A DNA stretch of 64,000 nucleotides from Klebsormidium nitens (Eukaryota > Plantae > Klebsormidiophyceae), in NCBI GenBank assembly GCA_000708835.1, contig DF236975.1, positions 124,001-188,000 of the forward strand. Direction: 5' to 3'. Under the pieces are notes generated by a model, which did not search any database, was not told where the DNA came from, and saw only the letters and a list, made by a program, of their open reading frames with translations. Within the stretch, counting starts at the first letter, position 1; each line of letters starts with the position of its first letter. The position numbers and the translations under genes are program-made. This document shows positions 2,363-30,699 of the stretch, piece by piece.

Positions 2363-5300
2363 ATGAGGAGCAAGGAGGATGACGAGCGGAATGTGTTTGA
2401 CTCTCAGGGCAAATTGGACCGCGACAGGCCGTCACCGAGAGGTTCTCTCAGCGATGCCTGGAAAAGTCGCGCCAAGGTGGCAGAGGGAATGCTGGGAAGC
2501 AGTGGTTTCAAAAAAGTGAACTCGGTAGCCCTGTGCTACCTTTTTGTGCTGCTGCTCATTGTCGGGCTGTCCTTTCAGCATCATATGTCACAGAGCTTGA
2601 AGCTCAGCAGGCTCGCACGGTCAAGGTAAGCACACCGCTATGGTTCTCAGGGGAGAAGTTTTTGTTACGTCCTTTACTTGTGTATATCCCTCATTATGTG
2701 ATATTGAAGGTCATGGCTCCTTCCTCACTGTGGTGACGCACTTTTGTGGAACTACCGGCAATGTGAACATTGATGACTGTTGAGAGGTCCATTGCATTCT
2801 GTACTTGCAGCTCCTTTGCCGAGCTTGTGATCTTGCAATCTCTGGGCCCGTTGCAGAATATCATGGACACCAGTGAAGCCAGTTCAGAGGTCCCATTCTG
2901 TAGCCCCTTCCAAGATTGTGGCATTACGTTTAGTTTCCTATCACACCAGGCGAATGTTTAGGATTGCCTCAATCAAGTGGTTGGAAACCTGGTTGATCAC
3001 CACTTCTTTCTTCGCCTGCAGCAAGCAATGGGAGAGCTTGTACTCACAGTCATTGGAGGAGATAATAGATTGGAAGAGAAAACTGGAGCAAGAGAAGAAG
3101 CTGGCAGCAGAGGTGATGCGCAGCACGTCTCAGTGCTTGAACTCTTGGGTGGTCGCAGTCCTAGTCGTATTGACACTCCCATCATTTTAAAGTGCTCGAC
3201 TGCTGCCCAGTGTTAGAATCGTTGGCCCGACAACCTGCCAACTCAGACGCATCAAAAGATATAACTTATGAGAAGAGTTGCAATGCCTCTGGAAATGTTC
3301 TGCAGTGGGTCAGTTGTACACAGGCATGCCCAATGCTGTGCAACCAGCCAAATGGTGGCACCTCTATACTCATATCACTTTCGGATGGGTGGTGGTTCAA
3401 GTGGTTTTACTGGGTTTACTGGTTTTACTGGTTTTCAATCCCTACACAATCAGATTATCCGCGAGCACTGATGGCTTGACCATCTCATATTGACACCGAT
3501 GTTGCCATCGCAGTTTGCCAAGAACGCCGACCTACTGGAAGGCACTCTCAAGCGGGTTAGGGAGGAGAAGAGTCGTCAAGAAGAGGTATTATGTATGAAC
3601 AACCTTATGTCTCCTTGACAATCCTTCTACATCGACCAAGAAAAAAGAACATTTTGCCTTGTCACCAGTCTACATGAGCATTCTTTTCTGATGCTGTTGC
3701 ACCACCGGTTGCAATGTGCAGGAAGACCGCATACTCCTGCCCCGCGGTAATCCCCTAGGCTGCCAAAAGCATCCCAAATCATGTCCCCTATGTTGCACAC
3801 TCCAATGCAAAGTGCAAGTTGAAAGCAAGTATGTCGGTGTTGGGCCGTCTCGCTCACAAGAATGTGCAATCATGCAGTGTCTCTGGATTGCAGGAAGCAG
3901 TGAAGCTGCAAGTGGACGTTGCCAGCAAGGACAAACTCAGGGAGCAACTTGAGCGCAAGCTCCAGTAAGTGCATCGCACAAATTCGAATCTCTCTTAGGC
4001 AGGCGATGATGATGGGTGTTCTGCGTTGGTCCAGACTTTGATTTTCCATTGCAAAGAGTATTTGCAGGCTACTGTTTGAACTTGAACGTTGTTGATGTTG
4101 CTGCAAAGGATGGCTTTTGGCGGAATGAAATCCTTTCCGAGAACTGGAGAGGGGTTGACAGTGTGCAAGAACTCTCAAAGAGGCCAAAGTGGTACTATTT
4201 TTTGGGAAGACTAGCCTGTACGAGTATTCACCAATTTTTGCAACTCCTGTTACTCCAATAAAATGAGCGGACTACTACCTGTCAGCAAGAGGCTTTTCAT
4301 TCTAACATACTTCTGGGATCGAAGGAAGATTGCCACACAAAAGCTTGACAAAAGAGCAGAATCCTAGAACCAAAGAAAATCTTAGACTAAAGTCCCTTCA
4401 TGGGACGTTCTGGAACCAAAGGAAGTTACCAAACGTGTTCACCCCCTATCTGCAGGGAGTCAGAGGACTTGTCGCAGACACGGCTCCAGGAGGTCCAGCA
4501 AGAGGTGCAGGTCAAGAAACTAGAGTCGGAGGCAATGCACCGCGAGCTGGAGGAGATGAAGCAGGCCGTCAAATACCATAAGGACACCATCGCAAGGCTG
4601 GTAAGCTTGCTTCCGTCTTAGCTTTGCTTGTCAATAGGTCCATTCAAACGAAACTGCGCACAGGTAGGCGAAGCAGGCTGTGATGATCCACCGCATTGCG
4701 GTTCAGCACCTTTGGAGCTCTTTAAAGATGTTGAGAAGACCCTTTTCTACTCATGCTGCCTTTTGCCTCCGTATTCCCTGATCTTCATGAAGAGAGCGGA
4801 AAAGGTGCGGACCATGTCATTCTGTATGCGCCACGACAACCTACTTTGCATCTCAAAACGCGCAAGGTGATCGGGGCCAGATGGAGGCATGTGGTTTCCG
4901 AAGCTTTCCAAAAGAAGTCGATCGACGTCGTTTCTTCGCACGGAACGCACTCTTACTCTTTTTTCGGGTCGAAAGATTCTCGAGTGTCGCTCACCTAAAA
5001 GCTGTCACTTTTTTTGTTTCATCGCCGGATTAAAGCTACAAAATGTGCTCGTACTAAGTCAAACAGTAGCAGAGATCTCTCCGTCGGATTCGAGTCTGTT
5101 CGTTGAGGTTTGAATGTTTCCCTCTCGTTTGCGGGTGCAGAACGCCGATAAGGAAGTGCTTGCAACGGGCCAGGTGAAAGCAGTGGCGGCTGCTGACGCG
5201 GCAAAGAATAAGACCGCAGCAATGGAGGTCGCCGTTCGGGAACTGCGGGACGAGCTTAAGAATGCAACCAGGCACAGCATCTATCTCGAGGAGCACGTAA

Positions 5301-7009
5301 GCTCTTTTTCTTTCTTTTACTTTACTTTTCGTTCTTTCCCGATCCAGGCGTTCCGTCTCAAGTCCTTGCTTGTCATTCTCACACACGCACTGCAGCTCTG
5401 CTTCAGACTCCTTTACGATACCCCATTTCATCAGCGAGTTTGATTAACTTTTTACAAAAGCACAAGCAGAAGCCAAGAAAGGACTGCAAAGCACGTGACG
5501 TCGTGAGAACCAAACACTCACAGCGGCTTCTTAGAACGCAATCCTGCGTATCCCCCATGCGAATGACAACCTTTGAGCATATGTGAGGTTGTAAAGCCTG
5601 TCTCCCTTCTCAAGCTGGATTCGAGCATTACTCAGCACAATGCGCCTAAGCGACATTAGTGATAACCGAGCGGATCTTCAAATCAATCGGTTCCACAGCT
5701 ATTTGCGTCAAACTTGCCACTTCATTCCAATCTTCGAGTTGTGGTCTGCAATCTCGAGCCGTCAGATGCCGTTTTGTTGTCGATCGAACGGTTCAAGAAC
5801 AGGATTAATGCTCCGAGGATTTGAAACTCATGGCAAACATGACCCAAACAGCTGCGATATGTTCAGCAGATTACGTCCCACGTCCAGTATAAAGCTGGCG
5901 AGCCTAGTAGTTTCTGGTCAACGCGGAACCTTCTGTCACCTTTTCCAGGTGACGTCGTTAACCGAGAAGAATAAAGTCCTGGAGACAGAGGCGCGCTCCA
6001 AGCTGGACTCGACCGCGAAGCGGATGCAAGACGAAGTCGACGCCGCGAACGCGAGAGTGGACGCGGCGCAGCAGGAGAAGCGCGCGCTGGAGGAGCGCGT
6101 CGCGCAGCTCGAGAGCAAGCTGGAGTGAGCAAAATTGTCTTGCAATCGCTTCCAACTCAAGGAAGAATGGCTCATTTCCCAGCGGCAACTGCTGACGTCA
6201 GCGTAAGATTCGGGAATGTTGCGTTGAAGCGCGTGGGCTTGAGAGGGTAATGTCTAGTTTGAAGGTCGCAAGGTGGACTTCCTTGACCGATTGCAAAGCT
6301 GGTGTCGCTACCCTCTATCAGTGGCGACGTCTTTTGAGGCATTAGTACTGCAAACGAAAGTACGAGACAGCAACTAAGCCGAACCGGCGCCCTGTCGTTC
6401 CGCTTCCATAAAGCAAACATCGACGCGTATGATTTGGGTCTGACTCGCACGCCTGAAGTCTGACCCTGGTAGTTAAGCATCTGATCATTTACATGACCAC
6501 ACTCGACTTTCCGTCCCTCCAGGCAGTCCCAGGCGCGCGTGACGGAACTAGAGGAGGCTGCAGACGCCGCCGAAAAGTCGCGGACGTCTGAGCGGGAGCG
6601 GCTGGAGTCCGAGATCCGTGACAAGGAGCAGCGGCTCCAGGAAACGGAAGCGGCGAAACGGAACGAGGAGGCGGAACGGGAGCGGAATGAGGAGGCGGAG
6701 CGGAAGCGGAGCGAGGAGGCAAAACGGAAACGGGAAGAAAAGGAAGAAGCAAAGAAGCGGCGGGAAGCGCAAGAGAAAGCAGATGCGGAGGATAGGGCGG
6801 CTGCAGAGGCCTCGGAGAAAGAGGAGGCTCAGAAACGGAACGCGGAAGAGAAGGCAGAAGCGGACGCGGCGATAGCGCGCAAGCAGGAGGCTGCGCGGAG
6901 AGCGGAAGCGGAACGGAAAGCGGCAGCGGAACAAGAGGCGGAGGATCAGCCAAACCCGGAGAAGCAAAAGGAGATGGTGCTGGAGGAGATTCGAAAGGTG
7001 AAGGCTTGA
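2363..7009 (+). CDS. Type II (signal-anchor) membrane protein with long coiled coil and charged EK/EA-rich tail, ~486 aa; golgin/GOLM-like architecture
   Basis: Phase-consistent exons 2363-2625, 3022-3112, 3514-3585, 3894-3964, 4456-4600, 5141-5296, 5949-6124, 6523-7009, all GT-AG. One hydrophobic segment (VALCYLFVLLLIVGLSF) is followed by heptad-rich sequence. Confidence 0.8.
3403..3435 (+). repeat. 9-bp minisatellite (GGTTTTACT) x3.7 in an intron
   Basis: Read directly: ggttttact gggtttact ggttttact ggtttt. Confidence 0.9.
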
Positions 7010-8334
7010 TATTGCGACTTGCTTGCAAACGGCTCCGATTGTAAGAAATTGCAAATACTAGATTGGCCGCATACCAACTGAAGTCTTTTCTGCCGAACGC
7101 AAGCTAAGAAGAGTCTTCGAACTTCGGACACAGCTGGAGCGCTTGACTTACTCTCCATGGCCCTTTGTCTTGCAAAAAAGGTTTTCCTTGTTTCCACCCA
7201 CTATTGCTGTCAGATGCGAAGAGTATGATGAGAACTGTTTCAATCAAAGGACTTTTTGCTCGCTGCAGAAACGGTTACTCGGTGTTGCGTCCCCTAAATC
7301 TCCTTGAAATGACCCAGCATTGATTTGACAAAAAGTGCGGAGGAGTTTAGGAACTGAGTCTTAGTGTTCACCGATCGGACTCGTGGCTCTTCGGTTTCGG
7401 ACCCATTGGTAGAGCGAGCTTTTATTAGTCTGTGAGGAGGTCACGACCTAATGCAGAAGAAGAATACCTGAGGAAGGGAGTTTACAGGAGTTAAGCTGCT
7501 TCTTTGCACACCTGAACGTCAATCCAACCGAAAAATTGGAGATCAGCTCTGCCATGCCGCAAAAGCTGGCGCATTCGAGGAGTGAGTTTCGCACCTCTTG
7601 CTCGTGCATGGCGCGTTTGAGAAGTGTTGACTAGAGTTAAGAAGACAGGTCCCTCCGTCCCTTGGTTCGCAGAGATCCTTTCTGAAAAGCTCCTCCGCTC
7701 GCAGGACTCTGAAACAGACGAGGGCGCAAGTGATGAGGGCGCTAACGAGGCTTTGTAGATTCAAATCTACACCGCTCTTGTCCCTCTTAGCACACCAAGA
7801 TATTCCGGACAAAGCATTAACTTATAGAGTCTTTACTTGAGGGTTACAAAGTCACTGTCAGTAGGTGCGTCACGTTTTTGAGCGAACAAAAGACTTTGAG
7901 CCATCTGAGACGCAGCTGCGGCTGCGGCTCACTTGGCGACGCTAATCTGGACGGTGTCTTTCCATATGATGCTCGAAGGGCGAAACGATAGTGTGTACAT
8001 CCCGTGTAGGACTAAACTCAAATTTTACGGACCATATTAAATGGGGGCCTTTGTGCTTGTCTTCTTTTATGCACCGGCCGGTCGTCACCATTGCACGACA
8101 AACTAATATCGGCTTCGGCAGCTGCATGTATTGTCACTAGCAGATGCAGTTGGGTGCCGTCACTTTCAGGGTGTACGCTGTGGCCGGTAGCATGATTAGG
8201 CCAAATCTCAAAACTCAGTGATACCGCAAAATCCTTTCTCGGGTCCGTTCTGCTCAGCAGACTTAGCATTGTGTATCTATGCAAGATGACGCGTGCAACT
8301 GATCGCCTAGGCGTGTCATGGCAGCCTCCCTTTT

Positions 8335-10476
8335 TTGTCGCGACAGCAGTTTGCAAGCAGCCCCCAATGGTTTGACGAAGATTGTAGGACTGCTCGGAGA
8401 AAGCTTCTGGACGTGTTGAAGTGTGAGGGCCCTTCTCACCTCAGTAGTCAGTTAAAGAAAGAGGTTCGGAGCATAGTGAGAAGAAAGAAGCGAGAGTTCA
8501 ATAAGTATCGCGCAGCAAAACTTGAAGACCAGATGCTGAACAGCCCAAGTAGATTTTGGAAGCAGTATCGCAAGCGCAGAAGGGGTCTCGGTAGTGATCA
8601 TGAGGCAGGTCTAGTCAGCCATTGCAAAGCTCTTTACGAGCAGTCTGGGGTGGATTGGGAGCCGCCTGGGGGAGCAACGAGGGGGCTTGAGTCCGGGGGT
8701 TTGCAAAGGAACGAGAGGGGGGCCAATTCGCGTCTTGAGGCGCAGCTTTCGGAGGCGGAGGTGAGGGCAGCTCTAAGAAGCTTGAAGAACGGGAAAAGTG
8801 CGGATCTTCAGGGTTTTACGGCAGAGCTGTTGAAAGCAGGGGAGGACGAGCTGGTCGGGGGGCTTGTTGGCGTCTTCAATAAGGTTTTTGAGGAGGGTGT
8901 CTTTCCAGCAAGTTGGAACGAGGGGGTCTTAGTTGCGATCTTCAAAAAGGGGTATCCCTCGGACTATGGCAACTACAGAACAGTAACAGTAGGCCCCGTT
9001 CTGGGCAAGCTGTATGCCATGGTCCTGAACCGGAGGATAACGGAGTGGGCAGAAAAGGGGTCGGTGCGGGCACAGGGGCAGGCAGGTTTCCGGCAGGGGT
9101 TCAGGGGGACGGATCACATGCTCGCGCTTCGGGTCCTGACGGAAAGGTGTGGGAGGGGCAGGAATCGGCATCTGTTTGCTTGTTTTGTAGACTTCAAGAA
9201 GGCCTTCGATGTGGTGCCTCGCCAAAAACTTTGGGCCCGCTTAAGTGAAATAGGGTTGGGAGGGAAGGTCCTCCGGAGTGTGCAGAGCATGTACGCTGGC
9301 GTGCGGTGCCGGGTGAGAGGTGAAGGGTGGATCTCGAAGGAGACTTTTGAGAGTAATCGGGGCGTGAAGCAAGGGTGCCCTCTAAGTCCCCTCTTGTTTG
9401 GGTTGTCCACAGACGGCTTAGAGGAGCTGATGCGTAGCAGCGCAGGGGACCCAACGCTAAAGGGGGTCGCAGTTCCTCTTCTCTCTTTTGCGGATGACGT
9501 GGTTCTTCTCTCAACTTGCGCGGAGGGTTTGCAGAAAAAGCTTGCGCTTCTTGAGAGATTTAGTGAGCAGAGCGGTCTCTCGGTCAACCTCCAGAAGACG
9601 CAGGTCATTGTCTTTGGAGGCCAACTCGGGGTTCAAAGGGTGAGGAACGAGTTTCTCTATGCGGGAGAGCGAGTTGAGATCGTCTCCAGCTACCGGGGTA
9701 TGGCCCAACGTGGGGTCGGAGACCAAGCAGAGAGAGTGCACCGGGTGTTCTTGCGGGGTTTGCTTCGAGTGAGAAAGTCGGCCCTTTCAAAGGCGGTTTT
9801 AGGCGAGTTCGGCCGTTTTCCACTGGTGATCAAACGATGGGAGCAGATCTTCAAGTTCGCTAAACGGGTTGAAAGCCTTCCATGTAATCGACTAGCGAAG
9901 CTGGCGTTTGAGGAGTCGAGGGAGATGTGGGCGGCCGGTAGCGGGGGCTGGTTCGCAGCGATAATGGAAAAAGCTCAAGAACTGGTGTCGGAAGGCCAGC
10001 TAGCGGGAGCTTATGACGTTGAACTCCTTCGCGAGCGTTCAGAACTTGCGTACATGCAGGATTTGAGAGAAGATTATGGCCGAAAATTCTGCACATACTT
10101 TGAGTGTGTTAAGCAAGGGTACACGTTTGAGCCCTACTTAGATGATCTAGCACATTCCCCGATTCTGTTTGCACTTGCACGTTTTAGGGTCGGCGCTCAT
10201 ACTCTAGCTATAGAAATTGGTTCGTGGCAAAGGATAGAGCGTAGTCAGAGGAGGTGCTTGGTATGCAATTCGGACAGTGTTGAAGACGAAGTCCACTTCG
10301 TCTTTGACTGTCCAGCATATGACGACTTAAGAGCAGCGTTTCAATTTTTGTTTGGAGACATAGGGCAGGATTTAAAAGCATTTTTGAACTTGCAGGACAA
10401 ATATCATGTAGGCCAGTTTCTTTACCTTAGCAACCAAAGGAGGGCTAGTATATTGCAAGGGTTGAGCAATAGATAG
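8335..10476 (+). pseudogene. LINE ORF2 remnant (RT plus zinc knuckle), lacking the endonuclease and apparently the KYLG thumb region
   Basis: The open frame starts in the post-endonuclease linker (QWFDEDCRTARRK). After VEIVSSY it jumps to AERVHRVFLRGLL without the expected KYLG segment. Confidence 0.8.
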
Positions 10477-10540
10477 ATTCGTCGACTAAGCCGATCGCGG
10501 CTCCGAACCGACGTTAATAAAACAATAATAATATAATAAA
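8335..10540 (+). mobile_element. 5'-truncated non-LTR retrotransposon (RTE/RTEX-like LINE) with 3' stem-loop and TAA-rich tail
   Basis: The 713-codon frame has RT motifs FVDFKKAFD, GVKQGCPLSPLLF and SFADD, and a C-terminal CCHC knuckle (CLVC...EDEVHFVFDC). No endonuclease domain lies upstream. Hairpin AGCCG-ATCG-CGGCT at 10489-10502 and AT-rich tail at 10514-10540. The exact clade is an inference. Confidence 0.92.
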
Positions 10541-10953
10541 TTCTCGATCGTCGGAGAAGTTTAGTACCATCAATGATTTGAAGCTTGAGCTGGCGGCCAT
10601 CCACACTGTCAGATTGCCTGCGCTTGGCATGCTCCATCTTGATTTTAATGATTGAGCATGCGTGTGGTAAAACTACAAATACAAATTTACGAAACCCCAT
10701 GGGCGGCGCCGCGCTTGCGTATATTGCATGATGACAGTGACAACCTTGCAAGTGCAAGGCGAATTTATGCCGCCAACAAGATCGAGGCCCACTAGGCGGC
10801 CGCCTGCTGTAGCTCACGTACTACTCGAAGCCTGTGCTTGAAGTTTACATCACGCACAACATGCATGGACCGTCTCGCGTCTGGGCCCTATTTTAGAATT
10901 CTGACGTTTAGTCAGCAAGCTACTCAGTGCAGTCAAACCTTGGTCAATTTGCG

Positions 10954-11009
10954 TTTTAGGGTTTTAGGGTTTTAGGGCCCTAAAACCCTAAAACCCTAAA
11001 ACCCTAAAA
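10954..11009. repeat. Interstitial head-to-head telomeric palindrome (TTTTAGGG)3(CCCTAAAA)4
   Basis: Read directly: three perfect TTTTAGGG units at 10954-10977, then four perfect CCCTAAAA units at 10978-11009. Confidence 0.97.
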
Positions 11010-14000
11010 AGCGCCCAAAAGAAGAGAGCAATCCCCGTGACTACCCACTTTTGCGACGAGTTAGTTACTGAGTCAGCGTAGTAAAAGAAGGCGACTGCGG
11101 TGGTGGAGAGCGGGAAGACGAAAGCCCACCACGCAAGCGAGAAGGTAATGCGCAGCACCAAGTGTGCGCGCGTGGCCTGCAAGGATGTGCGAAAGCATGA
11201 CGTCAGCTTTCCGTTCGGCACACGCAAGGCGGCGCTCGCGTAATCGGAAGTAACATATTTAAGGGATGTGTGCTGGACAGGTCTGAATGAAGTGGCTAGA
11301 TTCAAGAGGCTGGTTGGCGGGAAGCTCAAGAGTGCAGAACATCTCAATCACTGTAAAGAAGAGTTATGTCAGCCTACAAAAAAGGACGACATACAGACCC
11401 TGTTTTAGGAACCCAAAACACTTGAGTGAACTAATAGGACAAACCATAGGCGTATTCCGCTGATTGCACGTCCTTTCCAGCACCAAGGACCCAGTTGCTC
11501 ATTCACTCAGAGATACTCATTAAGAAAAAGCGGGGTTGGCTTAGTCTACCCGAGTAAAGCACGGCAGGGTCAGCTTAACCCACCAGAACCACGAAAAGCC
11601 CCAATGCGATGAATGCGAACCCTTTGGACAGGCTGTCGAAATGGCCGGGCCCCTGAATCTTTGACCAGGCTGTAGCCGCCATCGCGGGGGGGCTGATGAA
11701 CAGGAGGTATAGCGGGCCGAGGGGGGGAGGGAGGCGCTGCGATTCGCTCGGCCGCATGTAAACGGTGGTGAAAACGACCACCCAGTGAAGAATTCTGCAG
11801 ATATTGTGGACGCGGCTTTCGTTTATCTTCAACCGTTGAGGCGCGGAAAACTTTTTGCGAAATCCAGCGTACGATGGGAAAGACCCACCCGCTACTCTAG
11901 GAAGGAACCCCGGAGCATTTGCAGTTGACGGGACATCACTTTCCACGAAACAAAGCATTGCTTGAGTCTTATCCTCAACCATTGCTCGGGCTTCTTCATG
12001 CTTTTCTTCGGCCTTCTTCGATTGAGTTCGCTTGTAGTCTAGGCCAAAAGAAAAGGATCTGAGCAGGAATCCGGCACCCTTCTGTGGTCTAATGCCATAA
12101 ATTCTCGAATTGATGGACTTCGTGTCTTCAAGCTTTCTGCCCCAACCTTTGATCCAAAAAGAACGACGCAAGGAATGGTCATAGGGCTCTGCTGGAATCC
12201 TACGTTTCCAAATAACAACTCTAATGTTTGACGTGAGCCAGAAACTCGGAAGTTAAGTACCAGCCCAAGTGAGTGCTTCATAGCCTATACGTAAACGGCA
12301 AGAAAGAGCACAAGCCCAAATAAAGTGATTCATTGCCTAAACGTGGACGGTAAAAAAGACGCTTACCCGAACGAAAACATGAAGAGCGCGGGATCGCGCC
12401 ACCCCGCCCCCGCGAAAGCGAGCGCCGATGCGAAGTTGCCAACGTAAGCGATCTGCGCAATTAAGTTGATCAGCCTCGTCTTAGTGGCGCTTAGCAAAGA
12501 CGTTCCAACGTGTCAAAGCTTCACTCTTTGAGCAAAGTTCAGAGCGAGTCGAGAACCGTAGAACAGAAGGTTGACGAGTCTCTCAAGAACGGCGGCCCCC
12601 AACCTGAGTGGCTGCAGTAGCGGTCGCTCCGAGCCTGCCCTCGCACGCATAGATCCATCGACTGTACAGCAGAATCTCCCAGGCCAGAAGGGGGATTGTG
12701 AAGCCAAGCGCGACGCCCCAGTGTATCGTCTTTCCCGGCCCGTAGATGCGGTCGGTGATCTCCCCCGGGGCCCCCAAGCACAGCAGGAGAGCTGCCCACC
12801 AAGGGGCGATCAGAAAGTTGGTGCGGATCGGGCGAAACTCGAGACGAACCGCCTGCGGAGAGGGATCCCTTCGCGTCGTGCTTGGCTCCGAGTCGCGTCA
12901 CTTGAATATCTGCTTCGATTTTCTTGGGGTGAATTATATTGGTGGTCCCAAGAAGCGCTTCTGAGTGATGGTAGTGGATACATATTCCACACGACAGCCC
13001 CGTTCAAGTAAGTTTCTTGAAGTCGACCCAGGTACTTGAATCCCGTAGCTGTTAAAGCAGAAATTGAGCTCGAACATGTTCGGCGCTCTCACTCATGTTC
13101 AACCATATTCGATCCTGTTCGAGACGGTATATAGCTGAGACGACCAGATTTTAAGCAGGCATGTGGCTTGAATTGGCAGAATAGCCGACTTCCTGGCCAA
13201 AAACGGGACGGAAAAGAACTTCTATGTGATCCACATGGATACTATTTGCGGAAAAGATGTTTTAGCTGCTAAAGCTGAATACGAGTCGCACCTGAGGCCA
13301 GATGAGGAACTTAAGGAGGTACGTGACCGACGTGATCGGAAGGAGCACCACTCCGGCGCACCAGATCCCGAGCGGAATTCCGCTGGGGATGTGGAGGAAG
13401 CGAGTCGCCGGAAGGGTTGTGAGCTGCTGCCAAAGCACTGTCTGGCTGCCGATGCCTGAGCACAGGCAGGGACACTATTACAGACGCAATTAGAATCATC
13501 GTTGAGGGTGCTAATACGTTCCAAAAACCTCGGAGATAATTGACTGGAAGCAGGGAGACTACAACAGCAACTGTTTTTTGCTATAGCTATAGAAAGTGTG
13601 AATACTTGCGAGAGGACTATGACATCCCTTGGGGAGCTGCTATTCAAAATCATTGACCGCAGGAACGCACCAATAGAGAGAGCGCAACTGTGAACCGTGA
13701 TGCTCGGCGACCTCCAAGCCCGCTGTGCAGCGGGCCGGTCGCCTCAGTAGCTACCAGGTGGTCAAACCAGTGGCAATCGAGGGGCAATATTTGCAGTGTT
13801 GCAGACGTGGAAGAGGTCTTGTGGGCCAATCAAGTACTTACTAAAGATCGACGAAGATGGACGAACAGTCCGGGATTTCAATTGGCCCTTACCTAGATTC
13901 ATGCCGAAAGCCGTCACGCGGAAGCGCAGCAGGAATGGCATCTTCTTCGGCGGCTGCTTTCGTTCCTGTTCATCACATTCGCTCTATTAGACTGCATCCA

Positions 14001-14507
14001 GACCTTTGTTGAGCGCATTCAACAAAGAAACAAGAAAGGAAGTGAAGAATACTTGTTGCCTGTCCTGTAAGCGTTGGGGTGTGTCCTCAGGAGCCAGCAA
14101 AAGCACACCAGGAAAAGCTTGAGCCTTGTGGGACTGGAGAAGCACAAAAGGGTGACATGGAGCCAGCAGATGCCAGATGAAAAGACCGCCACGAAACTGG
14201 ACAAAGCACATCAAGCAGCCAATACAAAACTTCAGAAGTCTACAGCCTAAATGATATCAATCAGGTTTCTTTCATAGTTGAACCAAAGCAAAAATAGAAC
14301 TGGACCATAGAACTGGAATATGTAAAACCGCAGAGTAAAACAAGCAAAGGAAGTATCGTGTGCTTGCGGGCCCACCTGCGCCAACGTTCCTGTTTGAATG
14401 CTATCTATGTCCAGTGTGCTGGAAACGTGCAGTCCTTTCGTTTCTGCATCATCTGAGCGCTCCTTCTCGGTTGCAGAGTCACCGGTCCTATTGGCTCGGA
14501 TTCCCAT
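10988..14507 (-). CDS. SLAC1/SLAH: SLAC1/SLAH-family S-type anion channel, paralog A (~367 aa; C-terminally truncated in TM10, possible pseudogene)
   Basis: Exons 14507-14376, 13965-13893, 13455-13292, 12852-12604, 12452-12367, 11794-11584, 11176-10988, all phase-consistent. Motifs MPFLLRF, LGIGSQ, PIRTNFLIAPW, VGNF and FSLAWWAFVFP match the SLAC1 domain. The last codons and the stop come from the telomeric repeat. Confidence 0.9.
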
Positions 14508-15791: not shown

Positions 15792-17046
15792 TCATTGTTC
15801 CTCCTCTAGAAGCGACTCAGTAACCTCATCGTCCGGGAACAAAGTCCCTATGCAGAGTTTCCCAAGGCTCACGCACGAGCTAACCAGAAACGCCGCAACT
15901 GACGTCGCCCAAAAGAAGAGCGCCAGCGCGCGCACGACCCATCGTTGCCACGTGTCCGGCATAGCGTCCGCATACAACATGAAACTGACGGCGACCGCCG
16001 CTGTTGGAAACACGAAGCCCCACCAGGCGAAGGAAAACGTCCAATGGAACATGATCTTCCCCCGGGCAGCCTGCAAGGGTTTACGATTTTAGGGCTTCAG
16101 GGTTTTGGGGTTTTGTTGAAGGGAAGGACACGTCATAAATTACAAGGCATACTGGAAGACGCCAACCCTTTCGTACATGATACCAGGGAGAGGTGATTCT
16201 GCCGTTCCGGCTGTCAGCACTTTCTCGTACCTTTCACGAGGGGTAAGCATTCGTGGACGAATGAACCCAAGTCCTTCCATTAGCTTTTCTTTCGACTTTA
16301 ATCGTGTTTTTTGATATGAACGATGGATCAGCTCAACTTCAGTCAGAACAACTCGTGCAACACTACGAAACAACAAGCGAGTAAACCGAACCTTCCGACG
16401 CAGGGCTTCAAGGTTGCCGCCGGTTGCTGAAACCACAAGCAGGTCTAACAGCAAGACCGAGGGCCACAGACTGAGCTTAATCTACAAGAATGTGGTCTTA
16501 TCCACCAAAATGAAACAGAGACCCAGCCCCGCAACGTCGAACTCTTTGAACAGGCTATCCATTCATGGAGCGGCCAGGCCTCTAGATCGAAGATGTCTCA
16601 ATAGCAACAAGCATCTAACCAAAAAATATGAACGCAATATCTCACCAGCACGAGCAACAAACCGAGCGCCGCGAACGTGAACCCTTTCGACAGGCTATTG
16701 AAGCGGCCAGGCCTCTGGATCGAAGCATTTTATACAGCCAAAAACAGCTAACCCAAAAATAAGGAGCGTTAACCCACCAGAACGAGAAACAAACCGAGCG
16801 ACGCGAACGTGAACCCTTTCGACAGGCGGTCAAACTCGCCGGGCCCCTGAATCTCCGCCCAGGCGGTTGCCACTACCGCCGGGGGGGCGATTAGCAGGAA
16901 GTAGAGCGGGGTGAGTGGCCGGGGGAGTTCCTGGGTTTTACCGGGACGCATGTACAGGGTGTTGAAAACGACGAGCCAATGGATGAGCCTGCGAGAAGAG
17001 GCGCGGAGATTGTTAGCGCCGGGTGAAGGAAGTGGCTTCTGGTCAC

Positions 17047-21739: not shown

Positions 21740-21969
21740 NNNNNNNNNNNNNNNNNNNNNNNNNNNNNNNNNNNNNNNNNNNNNNNNNNNNNNNNNNNNN
21801 NNNNNNNNNNNNNNNNNNNNNNNNNNNNNNNNNNNNNNNNNNNNNNNNNNNNNNNNNNNNNNNNNNNNNNNNNNNNNNNNNNNNNNNNNNNNNNNNNNNN
21901 NNNNNNNNNNNNNNNNNNNNNNNNNNNNNNNNNNNNNNNNNNNNNNNNNNNNNNNNNNNNNNNNNNNNN
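21740..21969. other. Assembly gap (230 N)
   Basis: Run of N. Confidence 1.
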
Positions 21970-28529: not shown

Positions 28530-30417
28530 ATGGCAGATTCTAGAGATGCCGCTCTGGCTTGCGGGGAGGATAGATTGGTCGGGTTGGAGGAGGTCGTTCG
28601 CGAGTGCCCCCAGATTTTGAGGATGCTGACGTGGCTCGAAGACTTTGCCAGACTTTCTGCCGTCAGCAAGTTCTTCCACCACGCATGCAAGAGGCCGGAG
28701 CTCTACAGGTACGCAGGATAAAAAAGGGCTTCCCTGAAACATACCAGAAAGAAGCGCTTCGTAAGAGCTGCCTCCGAGCTCATGCTTGTTGCCAACTTTT
28801 GCTTCCTTGACATTCAATGAGTTGATCCAGTTTAGGTGTTTACAGCGGTTGTTGGCATCATTGTTCAGTGGATCATGTCAACTGAATCAGGTCAGCAAAG
28901 TTGTGTGCATTGGTCTGGTTGGGATCGGAACGGTCCATTCCAGTCCTGTTTATATGCGGATCAGATATACCAACTGCCCACAGAATGATCTCACTTCGAG
29001 TGCGGAGTTCTAGTAGAGACTAAATGCTGCCGAACCATTCGGGTGACAGGGGCAGAAAATCAAGGTCTGTCTTTGACCAGAACGGTTCAAACGATTCTGA
29101 GGTTCTGTGCTTCTATGCCACTTGAAATGAAACCGCCGCGGCGTAAAAAAGACAGCTTCTATCGTGAGAATGAGTGCGACTCGTCTTCTGGGCTGAAAAT
29201 TCTTGACGCCCCCTCTGAACGTACTGTGGAGGCAGTCTGAGTTTCTGTAGATCTGGCTACCTATCAAGCATTCAGAATCCTTTTCGATTTTCTAGCCGCG
29301 ACTCGACTCCCTTTTAGAAATGCTTGAAGTGAGCGTTTACAAATTTCGCGTGCCTTCCACGTACAACGATCAGAAAGCGACTGCGTCTCTGTGGCGATGT
29401 TGGCGGCACGTGACTTCTGGGCGACCAGACACGACTTGCTCAGCCTTTAGGTCGCCAGAAAGGCACTCAAGTCGCAACGGCATCCTAGAACGTCAGACCG
29501 CTTCGCTGAAAAAGCTGATCCGAATCGTTTCCTTTTCCAGGACGGTCCAAATGGAGGAGCGCATCTTTAGACGGCCACTGCTCTGGCTGGCTGAACGCTG
29601 CAGCCAAACCCGGACTCTGAAAATTCTTCGGAGCTGCCGCTGCGCCGAACTCATAGCAACCGGAAAGTGCATTCTCGGCGACGCTCTTGCCGACTTCCGA
29701 AAAGCTTACTGGATCATGTCCGTCGTGCAAGAGGTCTCCGAGGCGAGGGCGGAAGCTCTAGAAACTCTTCTGAAACTCTGCGGTTCTTACTTAGAGAACT
29801 TGACAGTGAGCTACGAGTTCCCTCTGTTTCCTAATAGCCAACGGTTGGAGGGCTACTTCGGAAGGGGTCCCAACTACGGCGGTCAACCCGACAGACTCTT
29901 CCGTATCGTCAGCCGAAATTGCCCGCACTTGCAAAGTTTGGAGGTTCCAGCTAGGAGCAAAGACTTTGCGGATCCGGGCAGGCACGAGGCGTTCCTGCGG
30001 CGGAATTCCCTCTCCCGCTTCGTTATGAAAGCGTGTCCGTTTCTCGTTCGTTTCGAGGAACCGGTTGCTTCGGACGTCAGAGAACTAAGCCGGGGCTGTC
30101 CTGATCTCCGGAGTATTCACACCCCGTACTTGAGCCTTCTACGCCCGGACAGCAGGAACTACCCCCCCGGGGAAACTTTCACCAACTTGAAGCGGCTGGT
30201 TCTAGACATGTATCCTGGTCTTTGGGACGCAGCAGACCCCACGCAGAGCCCGGTCTTTCGCGAGTGCTTCGCCAGTGCCTCCGTGGAGGTGAGCCGGTGT
30301 AAATACTTCCGACGATTGCGTTGCCAGTACTGCTACGTCACGGAGCCTGAATATGCCCGGGATTCGCGTTGCGAGTGCTTCGCCAGCGACTCCGCAGAGG
30401 TGAGCTGGTGTGACTAA
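28530..30417 (+). CDS. F-box/LRR-like protein, 351 aa
   Basis: Exons 28530-28708 and 29541-30417, phase 2. F-box-like N-terminus (LEDFARLSAVSKFFHHACKRPELYR) and Cys-containing LRR-like units (NCPHLQSLEV, GCPDLRSI, FTNLKRLVL). Confidence 0.75.
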
Positions 30418-30606
30418 GAGCGGAATTGGCGTTGGGCGTGCTTCGCAAGCAATTCCGTGGAGGTGAGCGGGTGTGAATAAGTCCAGGTTCTCCGTTTCGA
30501 GTGCTTCGCCAGCGACTCCGTGGAGGTGAGCAAGTGTGAATAAGCTCGAATTTTGCATTGCGAGTGCTTCGCCAGCGACTCCGTAGAGGTGGGCCGGTGT
30601 GAATAA
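30262..30606 (+). repeat. Five copies of a unit encoding ECFASDSVEVSxC; the last four have a 63-bp in-frame period and each ends in TAA
   Basis: Copies start at 30262, 30373, 30436, 30499 and 30562. In-frame TAA codons at 30415, 30478, 30541 and 30604. Confidence 0.95.
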
Positions 30607-30699
30607 GGCCGGGTTTTGCATGGGTCAGGCCTACGTTACGGTAGTACCCCCGCTCTCAAGAACTGAAATGTTGAATCCAGAAAGAGTGTGCTGCGCCGT

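Follow-up and report, generated by a model that had tools for sequence, protein, structure and literature searches.

A head-to-head telomeric-repeat palindrome supplies the stop codon of a truncated SLAC1-family gene in Klebsormidium nitens

Short interstitial telomeric sequences (ITSs) at repaired double-strand breaks are well documented in primates, rodents and the horse, where they normally run in one direction and lie in non-coding DNA (PMC7215372). In a rarer, head-to-head form, two telomeric stretches face each other at a repaired break. Two mouse lemur loci and one Xenopus laevis locus have this form among the TERC-ITS, in which a fragment retro-copied from telomerase RNA lies beside the repeats, and the authors of that study proposed that a second telomerase had acted on the other side of the break (PMC8537989). 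Here we analysed a facing arrangement of this kind in a 64-kb stretch of scaffold DF236975.1 of assembly GCA_000708835.1 (K. nitens NIES-2285), hereafter the window, where it truncates paralog A, one of two tandem SLAC1-family genes. To our knowledge, only a few two-sided cases have been proposed, all of them in vertebrates.

The K. nitens locus belongs to a class already known, that of short ITSs at repaired breaks, whose less common head-to-head form it represents, and it has a coding consequence. Like the short ITSs it has exact repeat units, an empty locus in a relative, collinear flanks, a deletion and no target-site duplication (TSD), but it differs from them in that two arrays of an 8-nt unit face each other in a coding exon of a streptophyte alga. 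With TERC-ITS it shares the two facing stretches at a repaired break; unlike those loci, it carries no recognisable telomerase-RNA fragment beside the repeats in an Rfam scan of 10300-11300, a scan in which K. nitens telomerase RNA itself was not compared and which returned only miRNA-hairpin matches, all of them below threshold. The head-to-head order with inward G-strands is also that of the human 2q13 fusion ITS, which joined two ancestral chromosome ends, whereas the flanks come here from one locus and the arrays hold only three and four units. As in the chromosome healing seen in Chlamydomonas telomerase-mutant survivors (PMC10620057), the repeats sit straight on the break, with 0-1 nt overlap and a T/G-rich seed nearby; healing, however, leaves a terminal telomere, whereas here both ends would have been extended and then rejoined, so that the repeats are internal.

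The palindrome and the end of paralog A

The block and the genes that it concerns lie in the window as follows.

10954..10977, plus strand: (TTTTAGGG)3 G-strand array, adjoining the 3' end of the left flank (...AATTTGCG)
10978..11009, minus strand: (TTTTAGGG)4, on the plus strand four copies of CCCTAAAA, adjoining the gene-derived ...TTTTGGGCGCT and encoding FRVLGF and TAG
10988..10990, minus strand: TAG stop codon of paralog A, made of telomere-repeat bases only
11010..11175, minus strand: remaining gene sequence of the last exon of A, homologous to paralog B and to the orthologue in the relative as far as 11010-11012
10988..14507, minus strand: paralog A, SLAC1 family, annotated coding sequence (CDS) of 367 aa, C-terminally truncated, with Pfam SLAC1 matches and exons conserved with B
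15792..16076, minus strand: open reading frame (ORF) over the last exon of the intact paralog B, the internal comparator, open to 16076 and ending ...TLFPDDEVTESLLEEEQ

The block is a perfect 56-bp palindrome at 10954-11009, (TTTTAGGG)3(CCCTAAAA)4, with no mismatches, with ...aatttgcg as its left border and agcgccc... as its right border. Its two arrays are head-to-head with the G-strands pointing inward, as in fusion ITSs and as the original prediction, made by inspection of this DNA, had described. Both consist of whole units that run 5' to 3' inward, with T1 at the flank side and G8 at the centre, which is GGG/CCC, and both sit straight on non-telomeric DNA without additional non-telomeric filler bases. 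The unit is of the 8-nt TTTTAGGG type made by the telomerases of K. nitens and other Klebsormidium species, with the exception of K. subtilissimum, whose telomerase makes TTTTAGG (PMC3622300). The two-unit 16-mer has five overlapping matches in the 64 kb, all inside the block, against 0.01 expected, a count reached by none of 100 shuffles. No second telomeric array was detected in the window by Tandem Repeats Finder or by counting units, and neither a further copy of the palindrome nor a TSD was found there; only the 3-nt GCG recurs near both borders, out of register. Transposon-like copies, which would be expected if such palindromes were the common termini of a transposon family, were not seen in the 64 kb of the window. 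The block folds as a perfect 24-bp hairpin.

Paralog A (10988-14507) and paralog B (from 15792 upward) form a tandem minus-strand pair. The annotated product of A (P0001, 367 aa, window 14507-10988, L002 10001-13520) ends in ...FFWALFRVLGF. Its conserved exons, shared with B, are open and free of stop codons, and the ORF over the last exon matches PF03595 (E = 4e-07, 29.9 bits against a cut-off of 27.9), as does the annotated product. In the minus-strand frame, ...VVTGIALFFWA is followed by CTT TTT AGG GTT TTA GGG TTT TAG, which encodes LFRVLGF and a stop; of this stretch, only the two bases that begin the L codon are not telomeric. Paralog B, in contrast, continues ...FFWA-TSVAAFLVSSC...TLFPDD and aligns to residues 438-508 of Arabidopsis SLAC1 (AtSLAC1), including the TLFP[DN]D motif that follows transmembrane segment 10 (TM10). 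In the AtSLAC1 alignment the homology of A is lost after FFWA, about one third into TM10 and upstream of TLFP[DN]D, and the protein ends seven residues past FFWA, lacking both a complete TM10 and the motif that B, both orthologues of the relative and AtSLAC1 keep. Thus, two further claims of the original prediction, a truncation of A in the middle of TM10 and a stop codon supplied by the telomeric repeats, agree with the alignments to AtSLAC1 and B and with the position of the TAG.

After FFWA, 42 codons are missing together with the stop codon. This loss of at least 127 bp of CDS takes away about two thirds of TM10 as well as the TLFP[ED]D motif. A motif and tblastn scan of the window for this tail recovered only B's own copy. 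Deletion of at least 127 bp of CDS with no TSD is the pattern expected of end joining. The tail of seven mostly hydrophobic residues brings the TM10 remnant to about 18-19 residues. As judged from its reading frame, A no longer has the cytosolic tail or the conserved TLFP[ED]D, and any residual channel function is putative. For users of the genome, P0001 is therefore a protein that ends in telomere-encoded residues and is deprived of a conserved part of the SLAC1 fold.

In the RNA contig X6 record 29, 11012-11175 is directly followed by 11583-11717 and the GT..AG intron between them (11176-11582) is absent, which indicates that transcripts of the truncated gene are made and spliced. Between 10465 and 10978 there were no RNA contigs, and we infer that the mRNA now terminates at the hairpin or close to it. 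Since the unit measures 8 nt, a TAG occurs in every frame within three G-strand units, so that any gene broken and extended in this way closes almost at once; a telomere unit can thus give a broken gene a stop codon and a membrane-compatible tail at the same time.

In the loop between TM9 and TM10 (11060-11090), A reads ADSVTNSSQKW, compared with ADSIHDTWQKW in its orthologue, ADAMPDTWQRW in B and ADALPDTWQRW in B's orthologue. These changes cluster in the truncated copy only, possibly reflecting relaxed constraint.

For the published assembly, 454 and Illumina reads were combined with Newbler (PMC4052687), and reads of that length should span 56 bp. Ns occur in the window only as one run, at 21740-21969, which excludes a scaffold join or gap at the junction. 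One sample provided both the DNA runs and the published assembly, and the Logan contigs of these runs were built with k=31. In DNA run X1, a 927-nt Logan contig is identical to window 10066-10992 (0 differences) and joins the unique left flank, exactly three G-strand units, the GGG/CCC centre and 15 nt of the inverted array; it ends where the next 31-mer is the reverse complement of the current one, which is the limit of a k=31 graph. Another X1 contig (10984-11413) connects the exon and right flank with C-strand repeats, of which it includes at least 26 nt. The C-strand array, at 32 nt, is too long to be bridged with k=31, so that no contig holds the whole block, and the count of four units rests on the published assembly. 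An artefact, either a misjoin of two telomere-ended contigs or a palindrome produced by a chimeric read, would be consistent with this lack of a k=31 contig over the whole 56 bp and with the shared sample. There is, however, no gap at the site, and the junction words occur at normal single-copy depth in the contig of an independent assembler. Moreover, the left array inverts after only three units and so cannot be a real telomere, contigs of a different organism support the order in which the flanks are joined (see below), and the homology to the orthologue stops exactly at the repeat. We consider an artefact very unlikely, and synteny speaks in particular against the assembly chimera that the original prediction had cautioned about.

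The same locus in a related alga

An HMMER search with the last exon of A as query returned P0001 and a 99-aa fragment, P0002, which is 87% identical and continues ...FFWA-LATVAFVIDSLGTIWKFCKGTLFPEDEVTKALVEGDERDGDN (...FFWA-LATVAF...TLFPEDEV...). P0002 is located on a 4-kb Logan contig, L001, from run SRR23617307; a word search with P0002 for more relatives returned P0002 alone. For the raw ORFs, look-ups in public assemblies gave no exact match. The contig matches the window in four places.

L001 180-397, window 11798-11581, 89%: penultimate exon of A (blastn)
L001 979-1150, window 11181-11010, 87%: last exon of A, up to the repeat (blastn)
L001 2429-2847, window 8061-7654, 67%: conserved stretch past the neighbour gene, which serves as the left synteny anchor (7654..8061, plus strand, after the convergent neighbour gene)
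L001 3608-4025, window 6945-6531, 79%: convergent neighbour gene, annotated at 2363-7758 (L002 16750-22145)

The window has no matches to L001 1150-2429, and L001 has the intact exon and, over 979-2847, no telomeric units. On L003, another contig of SRR23617307, the 3' part of the B orthologue precedes the 5' exons of A, and on L001 the 3' part of A is followed by the convergent neighbour gene. The two contigs together indicate that the relative has B, A and the neighbour in the order and orientation of the window, with A intact and no repeats, and collinearity on both sides of the scar implies that both flanks belonged to one locus before the event. In a three-way alignment, the breakpoint on the gene side is GGGCGCT/TTTTAGGG in K. 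nitens and GGGCGCT/CGCGACGG in the relative. The locus therefore presents what defines a short ITS, exact units in one lineage that are missing from the orthologous site of a relative with collinear flanks.

Between the two algae, neither introns nor intergenic DNA can be aligned. A differs from its orthologue by a synonymous divergence (dS) of 0.39, with a ratio of nonsynonymous to synonymous divergence (dN/dS) of 0.19 over 127 codons, and the last exon of B differs from its orthologue by a dS of 0.69. A neutral block dating from the split of the species would be expected to carry about 10-20 changes in 56 bp, and the absence of any change indicates a recent event. On the sequences compared, the truncation is shown to be derived in the K. 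nitens lineage, and the scar, read in the same way, is local and recent. It offers a clean natural example from the plant lineage, polarised by an outgroup and with a base-level breakpoint on the gene side.

These results bear directly on the reading that gave the original prediction its title, a telomere-to-telomere fusion of capped ends, whether of two chromosomes or of two distant healed breaks. The head-to-head geometry is indeed that of human 2q13 (PMC7215372, PMC8537989). The flanks, however, are collinear with a single locus in the relative (L003 and L001), and neither side shows subtelomeric repeats or repeat families. Klebsormidium is vegetatively haploid, and loss of the acentric part in a haploid would probably be lethal. 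A fusion of two independent capped ends is, taken together, extremely unlikely, and the break in synteny that it implied did not appear, L003 and L001 being collinear with the window across the scar. In contrast, the second option offered by the original prediction, insertion of telomeric DNA during the repair of a break, is supported by the collinear flanks and the empty locus of the relative, and the intact allele for which a comparison with relatives had been advised was found, free of repeats, on L001.

On the other side of the scar lies DNA of a different character.

10544..10953, no strand assigned: left flank, 410 bp, single-copy, with no detectable coding or homology and no RNA contigs

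No remnant resembling TLFP[DN]D was found to the left of the scar, the Smith-Waterman score of the left flank against the relative equalled that of shuffled sequence, and 10400-10953 had no homology to the region downstream of B or to the rest of the window. As a continuation of the A exon the flank is open and in phase for 33 codons, and the in-phase crossing from its frame measures 60 nt (56 telomeric and 2 flank bases on each side), but it lacks TLFP[ED]D and was rejected in that role. It was rejected as an old exon too, showing no significant similarity to B or to the orthologue; the divergence required would be too great for a perfect, young palindrome. As neutral DNA does not align between the two algae, the comparison bears on neither 10544-10953 nor 8062-8334, and the 127 bp given for the deletion is a minimum.

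About 300 nt beyond the annotated end of the neighbour gene (7758) are conserved at 67%, whereas introns and intergenic DNA are unalignable; this stretch is probably a constrained 3' untranslated region or an unannotated exon.

Proposed repair of the break

We propose, with a probability of roughly 0.6, that telomerase added repeats to both 3' ends of one double-strand break in the last exon of A and that the ends were then rejoined. A break in this exon would have been accompanied by the loss of some DNA, and telomerase would have extended each broken 3' end, by three units on the top strand at the left and by four units on the bottom strand at the right. Arrays of 24-32 nt would be too short to cap an end, and the ends would have been filled in and ligated blunt by end joining, giving GGG/CCC. 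The gene would then read into the G-strand repeats and acquire the LFRVLGF tail and the stop.

The register of the block is in agreement with this proposal, as two arrays of whole units, running inward from T1 to G8, are expected from two-sided extension followed by blunt ligation. Just upstream of the points of addition there are seeds made of a T-run and G, TTTG-CG and TTTTGGG-CGCT, each with a background frequency of about 0.05 or less, although both were spotted post hoc. The indirect signs for telomerase are thus a unit that is the product of the species' own enzyme, arrays of whole units and T/G seeds.

Several points weigh against this proposal. The role of telomerase is deduced from sequence alone, no single read or contig covers all 56 bp, and the left breakpoint has no outgroup comparator, neutral DNA being too diverged. 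The right junction has five T, whereas a strict alignment of the terminal T to the template predicts four. Arabidopsis-type telomerase templates end a round of synthesis at ...TTTTAG; if a round ends there in K. nitens as well, the GGG/CCC centre would need trimming. Finally, a LINE (long interspersed nuclear element) to the left of the scar points toward the C-strand repeats, as telomere-primed reverse transcription would predict.

The facing repeats could also have been captured ready-made, as head-to-head telomeric filler from an old fusion or from extrachromosomal DNA, or copied from a template in a polymerase-theta-type reaction, in either case without telomerase acting on the ends. In plants, repaired breaks commonly contain captured filler or templated insertions. 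The horse has complex ITS loci that include inverted pieces (PMC7215372), and the K. nitens genome has other interstitial telomere-like blocks. Arrays that start at T1 and end at G8, however, would arise from randomly broken filler with a chance of about 1/64, whereas they are natural with repeat-by-repeat synthesis, and the lack of any additional non-telomeric filler bases also argues against capture, which we regard as quite unlikely.

If telomerase did extend both ends, the event at paralog A might have counterparts. We put forward, as a tentative and rather doubtful extension of the proposal, that two-sided telomerase extension of internal breaks is a recurrent repair outcome in Klebsormidium that leaves gene-remodelling head-to-head palindromes. 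Were it true, a gene read into the G-strand units would meet a stop within 24 nt and gain a hydrophobic tail of the LFRVLGF type, and the 24-bp hairpin, beyond which no RNA was seen here, might set the 3' end of the mRNA.

The neighbouring LINE and other observations

The LINE that bears on these readings lies 0.4 kb from the scar.

8335..10543, plus strand: 5'-truncated non-LTR (long terminal repeat) retrotransposon, with a reverse transcriptase (RT) ORF at 8335-10476 (Pfam RVT_1) and an A/T-rich tail to about 10543

It belongs to an APE-type family, whose members align to it from 8338 on and in their full-length form have an APE endonuclease domain, which is gone here. The RT ORF is listed as a K. 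nitens protein. In the genome reads, other genomic copies share only 10467-10520; the LINE copy itself is unique in the reads, and one 9-kb contig crosses the LINE and the 410 bp of the left flank at single-copy depth. The copy is transcribed, as an exactly matching 1.4-kb RNA contig (X5 record 16) indicates. It was not found at the locus of the relative, and no convincing TSD was found around it.

The RT frame is open over 713 codons and lacks, between 9696 and 9712, about 75 residues present in relatives. K. nitens paralogs of the LINE are only 67-73% identical, which is indicative of a low-copy and diverse family.

Morrish et al. reportedly described, in 2007, endonuclease-independent insertion of LINE-1 at dysfunctional telomeres. 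The K. nitens element is similar in being a 5'-truncated LINE devoid of endonuclease whose sense strand is directed toward C-strand repeats, but its tail does not abut the repeats, from which it is separated by 410 bp and three G-strand units. A composite origin of the scar can be imagined on this basis, in which the gene end was healed with (TTTTAGGG)4 and then served as primer for endonuclease-independent reverse transcription. The template would have been a LINE read-through RNA ending in G-strand repeats, an RNA resembling telomeric repeat-containing RNA (TERRA) from a LINE near a chromosome end. Alternatively, the healed gene end would have been ligated to a terminal fragment, a broken-off piece made of truncated LINE, 410 bp and short telomere. 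The far end would then have joined the left break end. The orientation of the LINE, its truncation with loss of the endonuclease part, the lack of a TSD, and the absence of LINE, 410 bp and palindrome alike from the relative's locus are in favour of such an origin. Nevertheless, the LINE has its own A/T-rich tail, which ends at about 10543, short of the C-strand repeats by the 410 bp and the three G-strand units; no second copy of the 410 bp or of the LINE copy occurs in the DNA reads, so that a recent source copy is missing; and the 410 bp do not resemble the GCCAAAAAC... sequence that adjoins telomeric repeats elsewhere in the genome and was taken for subtelomeric. In addition, the failure to align with the relative is expected in any case, introns being unalignable too, and more steps are needed. 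A composite origin is thus unlikely, and we favour extension of both ends of a single break by telomerase, with the LINE probably representing a separate, independent insertion.

Other telomere-like sequences were observed outside the window. DNA contigs from elsewhere in the genome (X2) have a tail-to-tail arrangement, (CCCTAAAA)n - TGAGGTCAGGGGGGGGTTTAGGG - (TTTTAGGG)n, of an orientation opposite to that of the scar and absent from the window. In several X1 and X2 contigs, GCCAAAAAC(T/C)TGCC...CGAAATCA directly follows (CCCTAAAA)n and represents a candidate subtelomeric repeat family. Among the X5 and X6 RNA contigs, several that derive from other loci (374-580 nt) have C-strand units embedded between stretches of unique sequence (e.g. 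...AACAAGCCCAAAACGCTAAAACCCTAAAAA), which indicates that telomere-repeat-containing transcripts exist in K. nitens.

Two tandem repeats were noted within the window. Around the penultimate exon of B (16503-16860) there is a 132-bp tandem duplication (16569-16827), together with further decayed copies, in which the exon's 3' portion (..IQGPG.FDSLSKGF..LVLV) recurs along with the splice junction; both are single-copy in A and in the relative. At 30261-30662 there is a 63-bp tandem array of 4-5 copies with 70-79% identity.

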